Shown in pieces: positions 3,629-64,000 of a stretch of DNA of 64,000 nt; position 1 is the stretch's first letter; each line of letters starts with the position of its first letter. Made by a program: the position numbers and the translations under genes. Location of the stretch: the sequence record MT612988.1; one strand, given 5' to 3'. The notes below the pieces were generated by a model that did not search any database, was not told the origin of the DNA, and saw nothing but the letters and a program-made list of their open reading frames with translations.

Positions 3629-4654
3629 TTAGATGCCAGTGAAGTACTGAATAATTTGAAGATGATCGTCATACAAACGTTCTTGCATGTCCATTACTTC
3701 ACTCAGTGAGTACCATTTCGCTGATACAGCATCATCGGCTGGCTTCACTTTCGGGAAAGTGTTGTCAGGGTTTGGCTGCACTTTGAAGTGATATGCCATT
3801 GTGATACGAGTGTGTGGGTAAGAGCGATTGGGGTTATCGAACATCTTCTCACCTTTGAGAGAGCCACGCAAGACTTTCTCTGGGACTTTGATGTTAGTTT
3901 CTTCTTGTAGTTCACGAATCGCAGCAGTTAAGAATGTTTCTTTCTCATGCTTATGACCGCCAGGTAATGCTAAACAGCCTTTGCCTGGGTTGAACTTACG
4001 CTCGACAAGAAGAACATGACCTGCACACATCACAACGCTGTCAGCACACGCGATATTCAAGTGACCTTTATAAGGATAGTCTAAGAACTTCCCGATTTCT
4101 TCAACTGATTTGTCGTATTCAGCTTTCATTTCAGCGAAATTCTCTGTTTTGCTCCAACGATCAAGAAACATCATTGTTTGCTTAGGAATCAGCCCAGACA
4201 TCACAGGATGATTCAACAGAACCTCGCTGAAATATAGTTCTCTGAAGTCAGTAGCAGAGATAACTTTGTTATACATTGTTACTGGTTCAGGTTGAAACAA
4301 CTTCAGTTCTGGGAATAGCTTGAGATAGTAGCTGCTTTCGTCTTTGTCGTAACCAACGATGTGAGTTGCGCCTTTTGCATGAAAGCGAACGTTTGACTGC
4401 CAAACATCGTCTTTTGCGTAATCACCAAGTGGTACAAAGCGAACTTTGCCTCGAATATCGTCAGGTAGAGCAATACCCATCATATCACGTACTTCTTCGA
4501 ACGTGAAGGGGTTTTTAACTGAGCGATGTCGATTAGAGCTACCGATTAAGATAGTCATCTTGTCTAGATTAAGCGATTCGAACGCTTGGGTGATTGCAGA
4601 TAGATGACCGTTGTGGAATGGACGAAAGCGTCCGATAAAGATTGCGTGTGACAT
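3629..4654 (-). CDS. natV: Bifunctional NMN adenylyltransferase / Nudix ADP-ribose pyrophosphatase
   Basis: N-terminal GRFRPFHNGH (HxGH); C-terminal Nudix box GGHKHEKETFLTAAIRELQEETN; NadM-Nudix architecture as in KVP40 NatV. Confidence 0.9.
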   Translation of the reverse strand: MSHAIFIGRFRPFHNGHLSAITQAFESLNLDKMTILIGSSNRHRSVKNPFTFEEVRDMMGIALPDDIRGKVRFVPLGDYAKDDVWQSNVRFHAKGATHIVGYDKDESSYYLKLFPELKLFQPEPVTMYNKVISATDFRELYFSEVLLNHPVMSGLIPKQTMMFLDRWSKTENFAEMKAEYDKSVEEIGKFLDYPYKGHLNIACADSVVMCAGHVLLVERKFNPGKGCLALPGGHKHEKETFLTAAIRELQEETNIKVPEKVLRGSLKGEKMFDNPNRSYPHTRITMAYHFKVQPNPDNTFPKVKPADDAVSAKWYSLSEVMDMQERLYDDHLQIIQYFTGI

Positions 4655-51060: not shown

Positions 51061-51498
51061 CTACTTAACGTATCCCCACTCAAGGAAATATCCCTCAGTG
51101 AAGAGTTGTTTAGCAAGTACAACTTGACTGATCACATGATAACGCTCATCGTCGTTTGAAATTTCACTTGAATAGTCGCGAGACTCTTGATGCGATTTTG
51201 CATAATTCTCGACAATCGTAACCCAATCGCCTGAGTTGATTACGCTGACGTGCTCGGGACATGCGCGATAGATTTTAACTTTCGCATTCGGGTTTCCGTG
51301 ACAGCGTTTGATGATTTGATACGCCTCGCGCTCATCGCGATCATTGTGATTGCCGTACCATCGTAGACCGTTCGCTTCGTATACATCTTCAGGGAATGTT
51401 CCCGTCAATGAGATATCGTACAGAGGGCTGTCATCAGGAGGTGACGGCGCTCGGTGTTGCATGTGATATTCGCTCAAAAATTCAGTGTAAGTTTTCAT
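51061..51498 (-). CDS. Putative internal virion protein, possible ADP-ribosyltransferase fold
   Basis: MKTYTEFLSE (close to T4 MKTYQEFIAE); IYRA...GDWVT...YA...EWGY. Confidence 0.6.
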   Translation of the reverse strand: MKTYTEFLSEYHMQHRAPSPPDDSPLYDISLTGTFPEDVYEANGLRWYGNHNDRDEREAYQIIKRCHGNPNAKVKIYRACPEHVSVINSGDWVTIVENYAKSHQESRDYSSEISNDDERYHVISQVVLAKQLFTEGYFLEWGYVK

Positions 51499-51912: not shown

Positions 51913-51924
51913 TATTTATAAATA
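51913..51924. promoter_or_regulatory. Palindromic back-to-back late promoters TATTTATAAATA
   Basis: TATAAATA on plus (51917-51924) and on minus (51913-51920), between divergent regA and the GIY-YIG gene. Confidence 0.7.
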
Positions 51925-58971: not shown

Positions 58972-59477
58972 TTTTTCTCACTCGTAAGGTAAGTCACAAC
59001 CGAAGCCCAATCAGGGAATTCGTCTGTGCCAAAGTGAATGTGTTCGCCCATAAACTCACCTGCACCGTTTTTAGTGCGGTCGTCGATGAGATAATGACCG
59101 AAGTTTAACTGCTTATTGTGTGACAAGATCAGTCGTTTGTAAGCGCCTTTACCTAAGTAACGCTCAACCCACAATCGTTTATCTTGCCATGCACCGGGAT
59201 TATCCCACGGTGCGGTAGATAGTATATAGCAATCGAAGTGTTTGTTCAACATTTCAAATGCAGAAACTGCACCGTTGAGTGGTTTCATGTGAGCGAAAAT
59301 ACCCGGGCATTCATCGTAGCGACCTTCATATTGATTGCGCTCCCATATTGAAAGAGCATCAATACCGCTTTTGAAGTCAACAAGCACATTGTCCATATCA
59401 ATGTAAACAATCGGCTTTGCTTTCTTAGCGCGAGTGATCGCACGAATCATCAATTTAACTACGTTCATAAGCTTCAT
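58968..59477 (-). CDS. 5-prime(3-prime)-deoxyribonucleotidase (NT5C family)
   Basis: YIDMDNVLVDF, ILSTAPW, YLIDDR. Confidence 0.85.
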   Translation of the reverse strand: MKLMNVVKLMIRAITRAKKAKPIVYIDMDNVLVDFKSGIDALSIWERNQYEGRYDECPGIFAHMKPLNGAVSAFEMLNKHFDCYILSTAPWDNPGAWQDKRLWVERYLGKGAYKRLILSHNKQLNFGHYLIDDRTKNGAGEFMGEHIHFGTDEFPDWASVVTYLTSEKK

Positions 59478-59919
59478 TCTGCAAATGTTCCCGAATCTCT
59501 GTCAATCGGCTACAGAATTCTTGTACAGTTAAAACCGTCTCTGTCTGCTTCTTACGCCCGATTGAATGAGTAAGGGTAGCTTTACCAGTAGCAAGCAGTG
59601 CCTTTTGAAATTTGACGTTCTGAGCCAACGCAGCGTACGCATCATCGAGTAACGATTGATAACCAACCGAACCTCTCTGAATCGGCTCACCTTGCCAATA
59701 AAGTGTCTGAGTGCGCTGCCAGTTCTTCTTTGCACCGCGTGCTTTAGCAACTTTACCTACAAGCTTGCAGACTTCACGTTGCATATCAGGGTTTTTAAAC
59801 TTCAGTGACTGAAGAAACCCTTCCATTGAAGCACATTCAACGCCACGCACAGTGAATGCGTGTGGCGCAAAGTTCGACAGCGCACTGGCTGGGTAACCAG
59901 CGCCTGATTTGATGTCCAT
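59455..59919 (-). CDS. NADAR-family protein (T4 gp30.3-like)
   Basis: Start moved to MDIKSGAGYPASALSNFA; SMEGFLQSLK, TLYWQG, ALLAT...LTHSIG. Confidence 0.8.
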   Translation of the reverse strand: MDIKSGAGYPASALSNFAPHAFTVRGVECASMEGFLQSLKFKNPDMQREVCKLVGKVAKARGAKKNWQRTQTLYWQGEPIQRGSVGYQSLLDDAYAALAQNVKFQKALLATGKATLTHSIGRKKQTETVLTVQEFCSRLTEIREHLQNEAYERS

Positions 59920-60269
59920 TACTGACCCGCTTTCGCTTCTGCGAAAGAGCGTACGATAGTCAATACTTGTTCGCGACTTGTTTCCCAAAGCGTCTCAAGC
60001 ACATCGTCACCGACAGTTTGACCAGTAATAGAACGCAGCTTACGAATTGCGTAGATATAACCCGCTTTGTTCTCTTCAATTAAACACTTTTCAGCGTGCT
60101 TACGCAGACGTTTAATCTCACGCGAGTTCTTTTTGATGCGTCGTTTAGCTTCTTTCTCAATCAAAGCACGGCGTTGAGCGTTAATCTGTTCGAGATATTC
60201 TTGTACCTCTTGATCATCGACTACATCAACAATTTCGTCGTCTTTAAGTAAATCTGGCTTTTCTTGCAT
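59919..60269 (-). CDS. T4 a-gt.4-like conserved hypothetical protein
   Basis: EAKRRIKKNSREIKRLRKHAE...YIYAIRKLR; synteny between 55 and 47. Confidence 0.7.
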   Translation of the reverse strand: MQEKPDLLKDDEIVDVVDDQEVQEYLEQINAQRRALIEKEAKRRIKKNSREIKRLRKHAEKCLIEENKAGYIYAIRKLRSITGQTVGDDVLETLWETSREQVLTIVRSFAEAKAGQ

Positions 60270-61044: not shown

Positions 61045-61085
61045 AATGTACTCTCTTTGTTTTCGTATCTCGTTTCGATAGAGCT

Positions 61086-61121
61086 ATAATACGCAAAAAG
61101 GGTTGCCGAAGCAACCCTTTT
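61086..61121 (-). promoter_or_regulatory. PeSL-like terminator/early promoter
   Basis: AAAAGGG-TTGCTT-CGGCAACCCTTTTTGCG-TATTAT (17-bp spacer; UUCG loop). Confidence 0.75.
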
Positions 61122-61138: not shown

Positions 61139-61786
61139 TTATTTTGTCCAAACTACCGAAGCACCTGAACCAGATTTCTTGTAACCGTACTTTGAAAGGT
61201 CTGGAATACGTTGAAAGCTGTCTTTCGCTGTAACTACACCGCGAGTAGCAATTTCTTTAGCCACGTCTCTTGTTGCATTACCTGCTTCAATCTGCATAGA
61301 CAGATCTGGATATTCTTGAGCAATGAATTGCATCATGATATCGTTTTTGCTTTTACCACTGATCACGTTCAACACAGTTTGAGTAATGTCAGTACCGCGA
61401 GTGATATGGAAAACTTTACCACGAGCACGAGACTCAACATCACGAATAATCTCTGCTTCGACTTCTTCAGGTACAACGTTCAGTACGTAAGAAGTAAACG
61501 CCGTATCGAATGATTCCCCATTTGGGATAGTCAGACTGACATCAGTCCAACCATCAGCAGATGTACCATTGAATTTGTCATATGCATACGTTTTGATGCC
61601 TTCAGAGCGTAAAAATTCAGCGTTACGACCGTATTTACCAGCACCATAGTCAAGAGCAGTACCACCCGGTGTAAACATACCTTTCTTGTATAGTTTAACC
61701 AGTGCTGCTACTTCTTTACCACGTATCGACGTTGCTGCGGAACTGTACTTTTGTACTTCAGTTAAAAATTCACCAAATTTCTTCAT
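61139..61786 (-). CDS. Class I SAM-dependent methyltransferase with CTS-like N-terminus
   Basis: Start moved to MKKFGEFLTE; ALDYGAGKYG, YAYD, FDTAFTSYVLNVV. Confidence 0.75.
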   Translation of the reverse strand: MKKFGEFLTEVQKYSSAATSIRGKEVAALVKLYKKGMFTPGGTALDYGAGKYGRNAEFLRSEGIKTYAYDKFNGTSADGWTDVSLTIPNGESFDTAFTSYVLNVVPEEVEAEIIRDVESRARGKVFHITRGTDITQTVLNVISGKSKNDIMMQFIAQEYPDLSMQIEAGNATRDVAKEIATRGVVTAKDSFQRIPDLSKYGYKKSGSGASVVWTK

Positions 61787-61793
61787 TGTGCAC

Positions 61794-63239
61794 CTACTTA
61801 ATATCAATATCAATCAGATAGTTCGTTGCGTTAACGCTGAACTCAATCAAAGTACCGTCAACCGAAACGTCAACGCCGTTTTCAACGATGTTTTCCATCA
61901 TCGAGTAAAGTGTTTCTTGATCAAGCATCGCTTCAGAGAAAGATTGACCAACCTTGAATGAACTGAACTGATCATTTGCAAGAGCACGAATCAGTGAATC
62001 AACATCATCAACCATTTCAGTCACTGGACGTAGACTAGACATGATATTCGGGTGGAATACACGATTCGACTCAGCCATTGTTGAAAATGCAGTCACTGTT
62101 TGACGCTCAGGGGTAACACAACCATCGAACGATAGCATAGCTTCAGCAAATGCTTTACAGTCAAAACGTTTCACGCCTTTACGTTCCATCATCGCAATCA
62201 TATCAAGAAGCGGGTAACCTGCTTCAGATAATTCAACGCGATATTCTTCACACACACGACCTGCACGCATAGCATGTTCCGCGTTTGTTAGAACAATACT
62301 TGTGTTGTTGTGTTTCAGCTTCCAACCGTTGTCAAAATACGCTTCTTTCACATCAACAAGATTTTGCCATGCAGTCGATGTCAGTGGCGCAGTCGCGATT
62401 TCTTTCGTGAAAACGTTCTGAGCATGTTCAATCATGGTGATGTTCTGTTTCAGATCGTATGCTTTGAATCCTTCTAGCATCGGCAAGCCAGTATCGTCTT
62501 TACGTTCACGAGCGTATGATACGTCTTTCGCTTCTTTTACAATGAACAAGTCCATGATTTTACGGTTCAGTGCAGCCAATGTAAGTGCATTTTTACCAGA
62601 CTTGATTTTCATCTCAGTGATGTCAGACAGTTCGGCTTTTGAATCAACCGATTCAACAGTCACATAAACGTCACCAAGCTCGATGTTTTCAGCCATTGAC
62701 AGTATTTCAGATGCTGAATTGTCATCAATTGATAGCGATTCAATTACAAGCTTATCAGAATCAGCAAGATTAATTTTCATTTCACGCATAGGGAAAACAA
62801 CGTGAATGTCATTTTTCTTATAACCAAGCTTAGTCGCTTCGGCAACAACCTGATCTAAGTAACCGCCTTTAATCACGATGCTAGGAAGACGAGCTTCAGT
62901 ACACATGATCATAGACTTAACTTGCTGTAGCTCATGTGCTGGCAATGATAAGAATTCGTTTTCCATAAGCAAGTTGATTGTGCTTACGTTCTCGCTCAGA
63001 TTAATATCGAAGTTTTTCTCATCGACGTTTTTATCTTCAGCAAGTTTAGTACTCATGATAGATTTAAGCTCATTTGCCTTTTCCATCATGCCGATAGTTG
63101 TTTCAACGCCTTTGCCTTTGCTGAACTCAGTAGATGCAGTGCCTAGCTCAACAATAACTTGACCAAACTTAGGGTAGATTTTACCACCCTGAGTTTGACG
63201 GCGATTTTCACTCAGAAATGAGTCAAAGTTACCTAACAT
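61794..63239 (-). CDS. Large hypothetical protein with CTS-like N-terminus
   Basis: MLGNFDSFLSE; possible degenerate P-loop start KFGQVIVELG; TAAATA within gene 55 at 63421-63426. Confidence 0.65.
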   Translation of the reverse strand: MLGNFDSFLSENRRQTQGGKIYPKFGQVIVELGTASTEFSKGKGVETTIGMMEKANELKSIMSTKLAEDKNVDEKNFDINLSENVSTINLLMENEFLSLPAHELQQVKSMIMCTEARLPSIVIKGGYLDQVVAEATKLGYKKNDIHVVFPMREMKINLADSDKLVIESLSIDDNSASEILSMAENIELGDVYVTVESVDSKAELSDITEMKIKSGKNALTLAALNRKIMDLFIVKEAKDVSYARERKDDTGLPMLEGFKAYDLKQNITMIEHAQNVFTKEIATAPLTSTAWQNLVDVKEAYFDNGWKLKHNNTSIVLTNAEHAMRAGRVCEEYRVELSEAGYPLLDMIAMMERKGVKRFDCKAFAEAMLSFDGCVTPERQTVTAFSTMAESNRVFHPNIMSSLRPVTEMVDDVDSLIRALANDQFSSFKVGQSFSEAMLDQETLYSMMENIVENGVDVSVDGTLIEFSVNATNYLIDIDIK

Positions 63240-63248
63240 GTTAATTCC

Positions 63249-63761
63249 TTAATCGTAAAATTTCTGTAAGTTAAGTGGTTCTTTCTGTTCATCTGGTTGA
63301 GCTTTAGCAGTCTTGCCAGATTCGTAAGAATTGACACGTTCTAACATCTGTTGAAGAAAATCGAAATCAGTTTCTTCACCATCAATCGAGTAGTTAGACG
63401 AATCACATAAGAATACTTTATATTTAATCGCTGTATCTTTTCTTTCTTTCTTAATACGTTGTACAAACGCATTGAAGCAAATACGAGTGATATAAGCGTG
63501 TGGGTTGTTATACTTGTCAGTGTCGAAGTTCTTGATATAGCGCAAGCAATGTTCAATCGCGTCACCAATCATCTCTTCTTTCCATGTTGCAGTATACCCA
63601 CTAAAATTGTAACGGCGAGATAAATTCTCGCTGATCTTCATGATGCTGATTGCTACCACGTCAGGGACGGGAATTGCAGCATCAGGGTGTTTCTTCATTT
63701 CGTTTTTCCATTCGCACAAAGATGCGTACAGAGCTTTATTATCTACATAATGATTTTTCAT
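63249..63761 (-). CDS. 55: Late transcription sigma factor gp55
   Basis: YVDNKALY, YNFSGYT..WKEEMIGDAIE, NPHAYIT.ICFNAFVQRIKKE. Confidence 0.95.
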   Translation of the reverse strand: MKNHYVDNKALYASLCEWKNEMKKHPDAAIPVPDVVAISIMKISENLSRRYNFSGYTATWKEEMIGDAIEHCLRYIKNFDTDKYNNPHAYITRICFNAFVQRIKKERKDTAIKYKVFLCDSSNYSIDGEETDFDFLQQMLERVNSYESGKTAKAQPDEQKEPLNLQKFYD

Positions 63762-63769
63762 GTCACACC

Positions 63770-64000
63770 TTATACCGTTACTGCGTGAGTGTATGACAGC
63801 TTAGAACTGTTCGCAAGAACACCAAGATTATCCCAGTCGATTTCAACGGCACCCGTTTGATTGTCTTCTAATGGGGCTACGGTCAATGCGTATCGAGCAA
63901 TCACACCGTAAATTGGGTGGAATGATTTTGAGTCTTGTGTTTTATATTGATATGCAATACCAGCGTCTGTTGCTTTGTCAAAGTTGTATGGGCTGAATAC
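63770..64000 (-). CDS. Partial CDS (C-terminal 76 aa), hypothetical
   Basis: Open frame from the window edge to a TAA at 63770-63772. Confidence 0.55.
   Translation of the reverse strand, partial: VFSPYNFDKATDAGIAYQYKTQDSKSFHPIYGVIARYALTVAPLEDNQTGAVEIDWDNLGVLANSSKLSYTHAVTV

Follow-up and report, generated by a model that had tools for sequence, protein, structure and literature searches.

The methyltransferase gene of phage R10Z

The DNA analysed here (hereafter the window, 64,000 nucleotides) is the first 64 kb of sequence record MT612988.1, the genome of Vibrio phage vB_ValM_R10Z (R10Z), a KVP40-like phage of the genus Schizotequatrovirus (Straboviridae). The gene under study, vBValMR10Z_106, is a complete coding sequence at positions 61139–61786 of the minus strand (ATG at 61786–61784, stop codon at 61141–61139). 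It encodes a 215-amino acid protein, the predicted precursor of an S-adenosylmethionine (SAM)-dependent methyltransferase that carries a phage head targeting leader at its N-terminus. The protein is the orthologue of KVP40.0066, with 87% identity; it is annotated as a hypothetical protein in MT612988.1 and its family is PHROG 14016, the function label of which is "unknown". The open reading frame (ORF) pointed out in the first-pass annotation of this DNA proved to be real, and all the strings quoted from it were found in the protein: MKKFGEFLTE (residues 1–10), LDYGAGKYG (45–53), YAYD (67–70) and FDTAFTSYVLNVV (93–105). The ATG at 61786 was taken as the real start, because it is preceded by AGGTG, read from the sequence as a ribosome-binding site (61791–61795, minus strand, 4 nt upstream of the ATG), and because all the orthologues begin at this MK... 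methionine. For the latter reason, and because it overlaps the upstream gene, a longer ORF with a TTG start at 61813 was discarded. The AGGTG sequence overlaps the TAG stop codon of the upstream gene, which encodes 481 amino acids, and translational coupling is therefore possible.

Among 50,697 cultured-phage records, the gene was present only in 49 Vibrio phages of the schizoT4 type, and the product is labelled "hypothetical protein" in all of these records except that of Vibrio phage 1.081.O (SAM-dependent methyltransferase). A search of 5.8 billion proteins provided 233 relatives, and an exhaustive HMMER search gave 514 cluster representatives (50% identity clusters) at E<=0.001, nearly all the relatives being of metagenomic origin. 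No relative was found in 185,579 bacterial and archaeal species-representative genomes using three core peptide patterns, a pattern-based search that does not prove absence. The family is apparently restricted to viruses.

The N-terminus resembles the capsid targeting sequence of T4

The first ten codons (61757–61786, minus strand) encode MKKFGEFLTE, a predicted capsid targeting sequence (CTS) or propeptide according to its likeness to the T4 internal proteins IPII and IPIII and to its conservation in the orthologues. As read from the T4 record (NC_000866; a slash marks the actual or predicted end of the propeptide), IPII and IPIII both start with MKTYQEFIAE/A, and IPI starts with MKTFKEFTSTTTPVSTITE/A, which is of the form MKTFKEFTS...ITE/A. 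Each of these three proteins contains exactly one [LI]xE motif, located at the end of the propeptide. The R10Z methyltransferase starts with MKKFGEFLTE/V, and the LTE ending at residue 10 is the sole [LI]xE of the protein. The first 10 residues of T4 IPIII are enough for packaging, with residues 4 and 7 of the T4 CTS acting in targeting and residues 8 and 10 in processing (PMC9026906), and the gp21 protease cleaves after I/LxE (PMC12991175). The orthologues of vBValMR10Z_106 retain positions 4 (F/L), 7 (F/Y), 8 (L) and 10 (E), and are free to vary at positions 3, 5, 6 and 9.

Homologues of the gp21 protease (Peptidase_S77, 1.9e-98) and the gp22 scaffold (T4_CASP, 4.6e-71) are encoded in MT612988.1, as are Gp23 and an Alt-like ADP-ribosyltransferase (ART). 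The R10Z gp23 contains the sequence ...GLNE/AVVNGDHGY at the point where the maturation cut is expected by analogy with the cut in T4 gp23. The L-x-E specificity of the protease has therefore apparently been retained. A role of the leader as a secretion signal was rejected from its sequence, which is acidic and amphipathic instead of hydrophobic. The sequence of the N-terminus, its conservation pattern and its behaviour in other phages (see below) support its assignment as a putative T4-type capsid targeting leader, as had been proposed in the first-pass annotation.

The predicted mature protein is a class I methyltransferase

The predicted mature enzyme comprises residues 11–215 (61139–61756, minus strand, including the stop codon at 61139–61141), with a mass of 22.4 kDa and a pI of 8.9. 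Its N-terminal peptide, starting at V11, would be VQKYSSAATSIR. The mature part includes the motif TSI (T19-S20-I21), motif I (LDYGAGKYGRN), the acidic post-I residue D70, the strand FDTAFTSYVLNVVPE, and the motifs HITRG and FQRIP. The class I motif I (D/E.G.G.G) and the acidic end of strand 2 are thus present, in LDYGAGKYG and YAYD, respectively.

An alignment of 62 relatives (A1) was the source of the AlphaFold2 model and of the invariance calls. The model reached a predicted local distance difference test score (pLDDT) of 90.9 and a predicted template modelling score of 0.86, with residues ~20–215 forming a confident class I Rossmann fold. Residues 1–20 had low pLDDT values (50–57) and formed a separate short helix at positions 4–11. 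A model obtained from the single sequence (pLDDT 38.8) was set aside in favour of the alignment-based one. When the model was compared with the PDB using Foldseek, 221 matches were obtained at E<=0.001, and the best 50 of the 221 were all class I SAM methyltransferases; those listed act on small molecules, proteins or tRNA. Taken together, the Foldseek comparisons with the PDB and BFVD returned just generic class I methyltransferases plus one orthologue, with no clue to the substrate. The class I core recognised in the first-pass annotation was thus borne out by model and matches. A profile search of the PDB sequences gave a best E of 0.24 (TehB), and no NCBIfam model scored above its threshold for the family. 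Relatives P0123, P0137 and P0260 exceeded the Pfam methyltransferase threshold with 30–32.5 bits.

Residues D46, G48, A49, G50, R54 and D70 are invariant in 62/62 relatives, together with a family-specific set formed by T19, N103, H127, R130, G183, Q192 and P195. As modelled, the residues after the leader form a class I SAM methyltransferase fold with intact SAM-binding motifs. Since both the SAM-binding and the family-specific residues are invariant, the conservation argues for an active methyltransferase, and one that looks to act on a specific substrate.

Relationship to DNA methylases and to phosphorothioation-associated enzymes

One important question is whether a packaged enzyme of this kind would protect the incoming phage DNA in cis against restriction, as DarB does from the head of phage P1 (PMC5512222). 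In addition to this precedent, the basic pI of the mature protein and the fact that the closest named model is a putative methyltransferase associated with DNA phosphorothioation are in favour of such a role. However, the [DNS]PP[YFWH] motif was found in 0/264 family proteins, and the whole vBValMR10Z_106 sequence contains no cysteine and therefore lacks the catalytic Cys of a C5-methylase. With only 205 mature residues, the protein has neither a target-recognition domain nor a helicase partner; moreover, the top Foldseek matches listed are small-molecule, protein and tRNA methyltransferases, and the similarity to the phosphorothioation-associated model is limited to the SAM-binding half. Judged by these motifs, the enzyme is not a canonical DNA base methylase, and we consider a DarB-like protective role improbable. 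Modification of incoming phage DNA had been suggested in the first-pass annotation beside that of a host RNA or protein; with the canonical DNA base-methylase motifs absent, it is now the least likely of these options.

The resemblance to phosphorothioation-associated methyltransferases, which had also been noted at that stage, was analysed with the NCBIfam models. The model matching most relatives was TIGR04096 (dnd_rel_methyl), with 47/62 at E<=1 and a best value of 6.6e-8, followed by TehB with 36/62. Both models have in common with the family the pattern G.G.GRN..L...G..V.A.D, and the weak likeness extends over motif I (G.G.GRN) and the helix preceding strand 1, as well as over the acidic residue that follows strand 2 and a YVLNV-type strand 4. 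However, TIGR04096 scores were of 11–27 bits against a curated cut-off of 150 (cut-offs for the two models being >=150); when 11 members were scored individually, vBValMR10Z_106 reached 11.1 bits and the best member 27.3 bits. The match spans only positions 14–87 of the 478 of the profile, i.e. the half that binds SAM, as far as the YVLNV strand, and leaves out the conserved C-terminal half of the R10Z family (HITRN, FQRIP). According to the record annotation, no dnd, ssp or sulfur-related genes lie near the methyltransferase gene, whose neighbours are gp24, gp55, gp47 and similar genes, and PADLOC gave no match. The likeness at the sequence level is therefore real but weak, and the family lies outside TIGR04096.

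TehB-type enzymes methylate chalcogen nucleophiles. An injected S-methyltransferase acting on a sulfur nucleophile, such as phosphorothioate host DNA or a thiol metabolite, would be in keeping with TIGR04096 and TehB being the most often matched models. The distance of these matches from the family cut-offs, their restriction to the cofactor-binding half and the gene context described above speak against it, and this speculative explanation is scarcely probable at all.

Other R10Z proteins carry the same leader

The 247-kb R10Z genome was scanned with a strict leader pattern, which occurred at four ORF starts, one of them doubtful and three near-copies of the T4 CTS. The three clear cases are the methyltransferase, a 145-amino acid protein and an 80-amino acid protein. 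A looser pattern added a 91-amino acid protein (MSIKTFSEYLNE) and the 481-amino acid product of the gene upstream of the methyltransferase (MLGNFDSFLSE). The core leader motif has a frequency of 4.3e-4 per residue within ORFs and the strict pattern is rare genome-wide; for both reasons the leader is beyond what chance would provide. The Alt-like protein, encoded 5 kb from the methyltransferase gene, also has such a leader (MIGFQQLNE).

The 145-amino acid protein (51061–51498, minus strand) starts with MKTYTEFLSE, which is identical to the IPII/IPIII CTS at 8/10 positions, which shows that several R10Z proteins have this signal in common. Its gene lies directly after regA, with its start overlapping the regA stop codon, and an exact TATAAATA is located upstream of regA at 51913–51920 (minus strand). 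This protein matches only the C-terminal part (331–461 of 472) of phrog_2579, labelled "ParB C-terminal domain". The 80-amino acid ORF (MKTFDEFITE; MT612988.1 168162–168404, plus strand; 4162–4404 of the extracted segment L005) and the 91-amino acid ORF (169460–169735, plus strand; L005 5460–5735), the latter with TATAAATA upstream, are found in a gene-poor region that we take to be the tRNA region, like the neighbourhood of T4 ipI, ipII and ipIII. These two ORFs are likely the true internal-protein analogues of R10Z.

The leaders of R10Z differ from each other in synonymous codons and in their upstream regions. The former indicates selection on the leader at the protein level, and a function as mRNA-level or translation signal was rejected on both grounds.

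Two prohead core proteins, gp22 (MQIKEQLLE) and gp21 (MELQLLIE), follow the same leader and cleavage logic. This would be compatible with the methyltransferase being itself a core component with a structural or vestigial fold, which, as happens to gp22, gp67 and gp68, would be broken down or leave the head during maturation and would never be delivered as an enzyme. However, the SAM-binding residues and the polar residues N103, H127, R130 and Q192 are invariant across relatives that are 34–45% identical, which argues for catalysis. In addition, the protein has a single [LI]xE site, so its body should survive the protease, and fusions of relatives to GNAT and ART domains (see below) point to an effector role. 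A core component is consequently a very improbable explanation.

Leader sequences follow the phage rather than the enzyme

In order to analyse the behaviour of the leader outside the Vibrio phages, relatives and their loci were compared. Leaderless relatives begin at or just before the conserved Y.G.PLE.GGTSI segment. In the fusion relatives P0123 (MKSTEFITEA), P0125 (MRIIEILTES) and P0137 (MKITNLFESV), the leader occupies the extreme N-terminus and another domain, GNAT in the case of P0137, precedes the methyltransferase. The existence of leaderless and of fused relatives led us to reject the leader as a part of the methyltransferase fold. A hydrophobic-hydrophobic-x-acid motif was present in residues 2–14 of 58/132 relatives, compared with 13.5 +/- 3.5 after shuffling.

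In contigs of uncultured T4-like phages, unrelated genes of one locus begin with the same type of leader. At locus L008, where the methyltransferase gene lies between gp4 and the terminase gene, the enzyme starts with MKLSEILEE, the next unrelated gene with MKLSEILET and three more with MKL..(L/I/V)... At L019, at least nine genes start with M[KR][LF]K.[YF][LI].E, including those for a SprT-like protease, an AAA_33 kinase and a GNAT protein, and seven leaders at L018 have the form ..A..II.LFE. The leaders of L018 and L019, and most of those of L008, end in [LI]xE. N-termini similar to the methyltransferase leader occurred five times as often within loci as between them (Fisher p = 2.7e-7), and [LI]xE in residues 5–14 was enriched in leader-type loci (L018, p = 4e-5; L019, p = 9e-4; L007, p = 0.01), although the locus p-values are indicative only, because the gene calls were simple and ORFs were treated as independent. 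No such enrichment was found in residues 5–14 for loci with leaderless methyltransferases. These sequence comparisons support the conclusion that the leader varies with the phage, not with the enzyme, and is common to unrelated neighbouring genes.

The distant relative P0260, from a quite different phage, is a fusion of ART-PolyVal and methyltransferase encoded between the terminase and portal genes, an interval that is a classic place for head-packaged effectors (PMC5512222, PMC9503650).

Two IMG/VR contigs (L019:6842–17724 and L018:5285–17914) contain arrays of 7–10 or more neighbouring ORFs with a common, lineage-specific leader ending in [LI]xE. Identifiable domains of these arrays include the SprT-like protease, the AAA_33 P-loop kinase, GNAT and the methyltransferase, and the arrays have the appearance of candidate "cargo islands" for effectors packaged in the head. 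In a Tara contig (L007:9333–16000), the methyltransferase (MKATDLYIYE) is flanked by ORFs starting with MRISELSKTD, MRKLRDLIALIE, MRDLINLINE and MRALEFIIEG, N-termini that possibly represent another leader family. The MRISELSKTD ORF has a faint T7-kinase-like match and the MRKLRDLIALIE ORF is a Nudix protein, which would fit the packaged Nudix predicted previously (PMC9503650).

Transcription unit and neighbouring genes

The gene directly upstream of the methyltransferase gene (61794–63239, minus strand; PHROG 14490, function label "unknown") encodes the 481-amino acid protein with the leader-like start MLGNFDSFLSE/N. This has the same F..FL.E core, offset by one residue, and is conserved in KVP40 and D479, whereas the E is lost in 1.081.O. 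Judging by this N-terminus, the unit extending from gp24 to the methyltransferase may encode a second protein targeted to the head. Further upstream, the annotation places the gp55 late sigma factor (63249–63761, minus strand; gaps of 8–9 nt on either side) and gene 24, for the head vertex protein, whose 3' part occupies 63770–64000 of the window and which continues to 64669 (minus strand). An exact late promoter TATAAATA is present upstream of gp24 at record positions 64726–64733, just outside the window. No late promoter was found within 61–64 kb, the one upstream of gp24 being the nearest exact TATAAATA.

An intrinsic terminator (61095–61121, minus strand) is located 17 nt past the methyltransferase stop codon, with an A run and a U run on the two sides of its hairpin, GGGUUGC-UUCG-GCAACCC. 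The folding energy is -18.1 kcal/mol (z -3.75) and 0/200 shuffles were as good. It was missed by the consensus terminator scan because the A and U runs pair with each other, and it was revealed by folding. The KVP40 hairpin is identical, and those of 1.081.O and D479 are in the same place with another stem sequence. The order late promoter TATAAATA, gp24, gp55, ~480-amino acid gene, methyltransferase and terminator is kept in four diverged Schizotequatrovirus genomes (R10Z, KVP40, 1.081.O and D479), and that of the four genes is conserved down to ~50% protein identity. This conserved unit with its late promoter indicates that the methyltransferase can be made late, together with a head protein.

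Some further features of this region were recorded. Directly past the hairpin (window ~61045–61095, minus strand), an early-type leader region of the form TATTATAGC..ATCGAAACGAGATAC..AGAGAG..ATT-ATG opens a new unit. The same region is repeated upstream of the genes starting at record positions 65956 and 66568, and it resembles the promoter-terminator (PeSL) cassettes of T4-like phages (PMC4122927). The R10Z gp24 lacks both a leader-like N-terminus and any [LI]xE site; according to reviews, a short (10–20 residue) N-terminal propeptide is removed from T4 gp24, and a possible internal deletion is noted in the KVP40 record. Four genes downstream of the methyltransferase, a gp30.3-family protein (59455–59988, minus strand) gave a weak NADAR match and carries no leader; NADAR proteins are among the ADP-ribose-processing enzymes proposed as early-deployed or packaged in myoviruses (PMC9503650).

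Proposed packaging and delivery of the methyltransferase

The best explanation for these results, which we consider probable although by no means certain, is that vBValMR10Z_106 is made as a leader-carrying precursor which is packaged, cleaved and ejected with the DNA in order to methylate a host target. The precursor, consisting of the 10-residue CTS plus the ~22-kDa basic class I SAM-dependent methyltransferase, would be made at least partly from the late transcript starting upstream of gene 24. Its amphipathic leader, through the hydrophobic positions 4 and 7, would attach it to the scaffolding core, made of gp22, while the prohead is being assembled. The gp21-type protease (Peptidase_S77) would then cut after the LTE at residue 10, leaving the mature enzyme in the head with the DNA. 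In the next infection the methyltransferase would probably be delivered into the Vibrio cell along with the phage DNA, like T4 Alt and the internal proteins, and it would use host SAM to methylate its target before any phage gene expression. This target would most likely be a host protein, RNA or small molecule and not a DNA base, because of the ART, GNAT, kinase, protease and Nudix company and the lack of DNA-methylase motifs.

Several observations weigh against this explanation. The Foldseek matches to the PDB are generic (TM score 0.4–0.55) and give no clue to the substrate, and the Pfam model Methyltransf_23 scored 15.5 bits on vBValMR10Z_106, below its threshold of 27. The depletion of [LI]xE in the mature enzyme is not significant (0 observed, ~1.3 expected, P ~0.24), and nine such sites are present in the neighbouring 481-amino acid protein. 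The genes of the metagenomic loci were crude first-ATG calls and the ORFs within a locus are not independent. In the literature search, neither a virion proteome of a KVP40-like phage nor other proteomic evidence of packaging was found. Finally, gp55, which is needed before late transcription, precedes the methyltransferase gene, and a sigma-70-like match lies in front of gp55, at 63766–63738, so that early expression without packaging may also occur.

The last two points also favour an ordinary, non-packaged methyltransferase that remains in the cell in which it is synthesised and there modifies RNA, proteins or metabolites of the phage or the host, its N-terminal helix being coincidental or used otherwise (for example in folding, interaction with another phage protein or translation efficiency). 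The gene belongs to a series on the minus strand that includes gp55 and genes for replication or recombination, and it may be expressed early from the sigma-70-like site; furthermore, some relatives are devoid of a leader, so the enzyme can work without one. Nevertheless, several features of the leader speak against this alternative: it matches the tested T4 CTS at its functional positions, it is found on unrelated R10Z proteins, it varies together with the phage in other lineages, and it remains N-terminal in fusions. The differing synonymous codons argue against an mRNA-level feature, and elsewhere (L008 and P0260) the family sits in head gene modules. We therefore regard a non-packaged enzyme as rather unlikely.

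Comparison with known packaged proteins

The R10Z protein resembles the T4 internal proteins in its 10-residue MK(T)(Y/F).EF(I/L).E leader, in the single [LI]xE at the end of this leader and in its basic mature part; gp21 and gp22 homologues are present in the same genome, and there are other small leader ORFs near the presumed tRNA region. It differs in that its cargo is a folded 22-kDa enzyme instead of a small DNA-associated protein or restriction inhibitor, with packaging being predicted, and in that the gene is found in the gp24–gp55 unit and not in ip loci. The statement in the first-pass annotation that no methyltransferase is known among the T4 internal proteins is consistent with the list of T4 head proteins (PMC9026906).

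T4 Alt is a packaged and injected ADP-ribosyltransferase with a short, gp21-processed N-terminal propeptide, which hits host targets right after ejection (PMC9026906, PMC9503650). The R10Z methyltransferase would likewise be a head-carried enzyme with a gp21-processed leader, but it is much smaller and is predicted to transfer methyl groups from SAM, whereas Alt transfers ADP-ribosyl from NAD. P1 DarB is a packaged methylase delivered with the DNA from the phage head (PMC5512222). Delivery of a methyltransferase with the DNA would be common to both systems, and the distant relative P0260 is fused to ART-PolyVal next to the portal gene. However, DarB is a very large protein in which an N6-adenine DNA methylase is joined to a helicase, whereas the R10Z family lacks [DNS]PP[YFW], helicase and LPD36. 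A polyvalent protein unites at least two unrelated effector domains in a single polypeptide and is encoded with head or transfer genes (PMC5512222). The R10Z protein, with a single domain and a predicted cleavable leader, is not of this type, unlike its relatives P0260 (ART-PolyVal plus methyltransferase) and P0137 (GNAT plus methyltransferase).

Significance

Frequent packaging of enzymes in myovirus heads has been argued before (PMC9503650), and the kind of protein described here is already known from CTS-targeted internal proteins and, among packaged enzymes, from Alt and DarB. The novelty lies in the type of cargo, since this methyltransferase family is uncharacterised and apparently confined to viruses, and in the comparative data showing that the leader follows the phage. 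No published description of either was found in a literature search whose coverage did not include the KVP40 genome paper. The enzymes seen with such leaders comprise the methyltransferase, a P-loop kinase, a GNAT acetyltransferase, a SprT-like protease and a Nudix hydrolase. As a tentative but plausible generalisation, vBValMR10Z_106 may represent, among cultured phages, a large and apparently virus-only family (514 clusters) of methyltransferase effectors delivered by the virion, and phages of the T4 superfamily may load "cargo islands" of host-modifying enzymes by means of short, lineage-specific, protease-removable leaders.

A leader that changes with the phage, is common to neighbouring genes and ends in the protease motif suggests a sequence rule for the prediction of virion cargo in metagenomic T4-like phages. 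If this is true, the proteins injected by an uncultured phage could be deduced directly from the genome once the leader has been identified. The R10Z gene would provide a well-defined candidate that is easy to test, in a Vibrio phage that can be cultivated, and its leader could serve to bring foreign proteins into the heads of KVP40-like phages, as previously achieved with T4. The known injected proteins of the T4 group are an ADP-ribosyltransferase and a few small proteins. Injected proteins act before phage gene expression and hence matter for overcoming host defences and for the takeover of the cell; a conserved injected methyltransferase, if confirmed, would add a new chemistry to this first strike.

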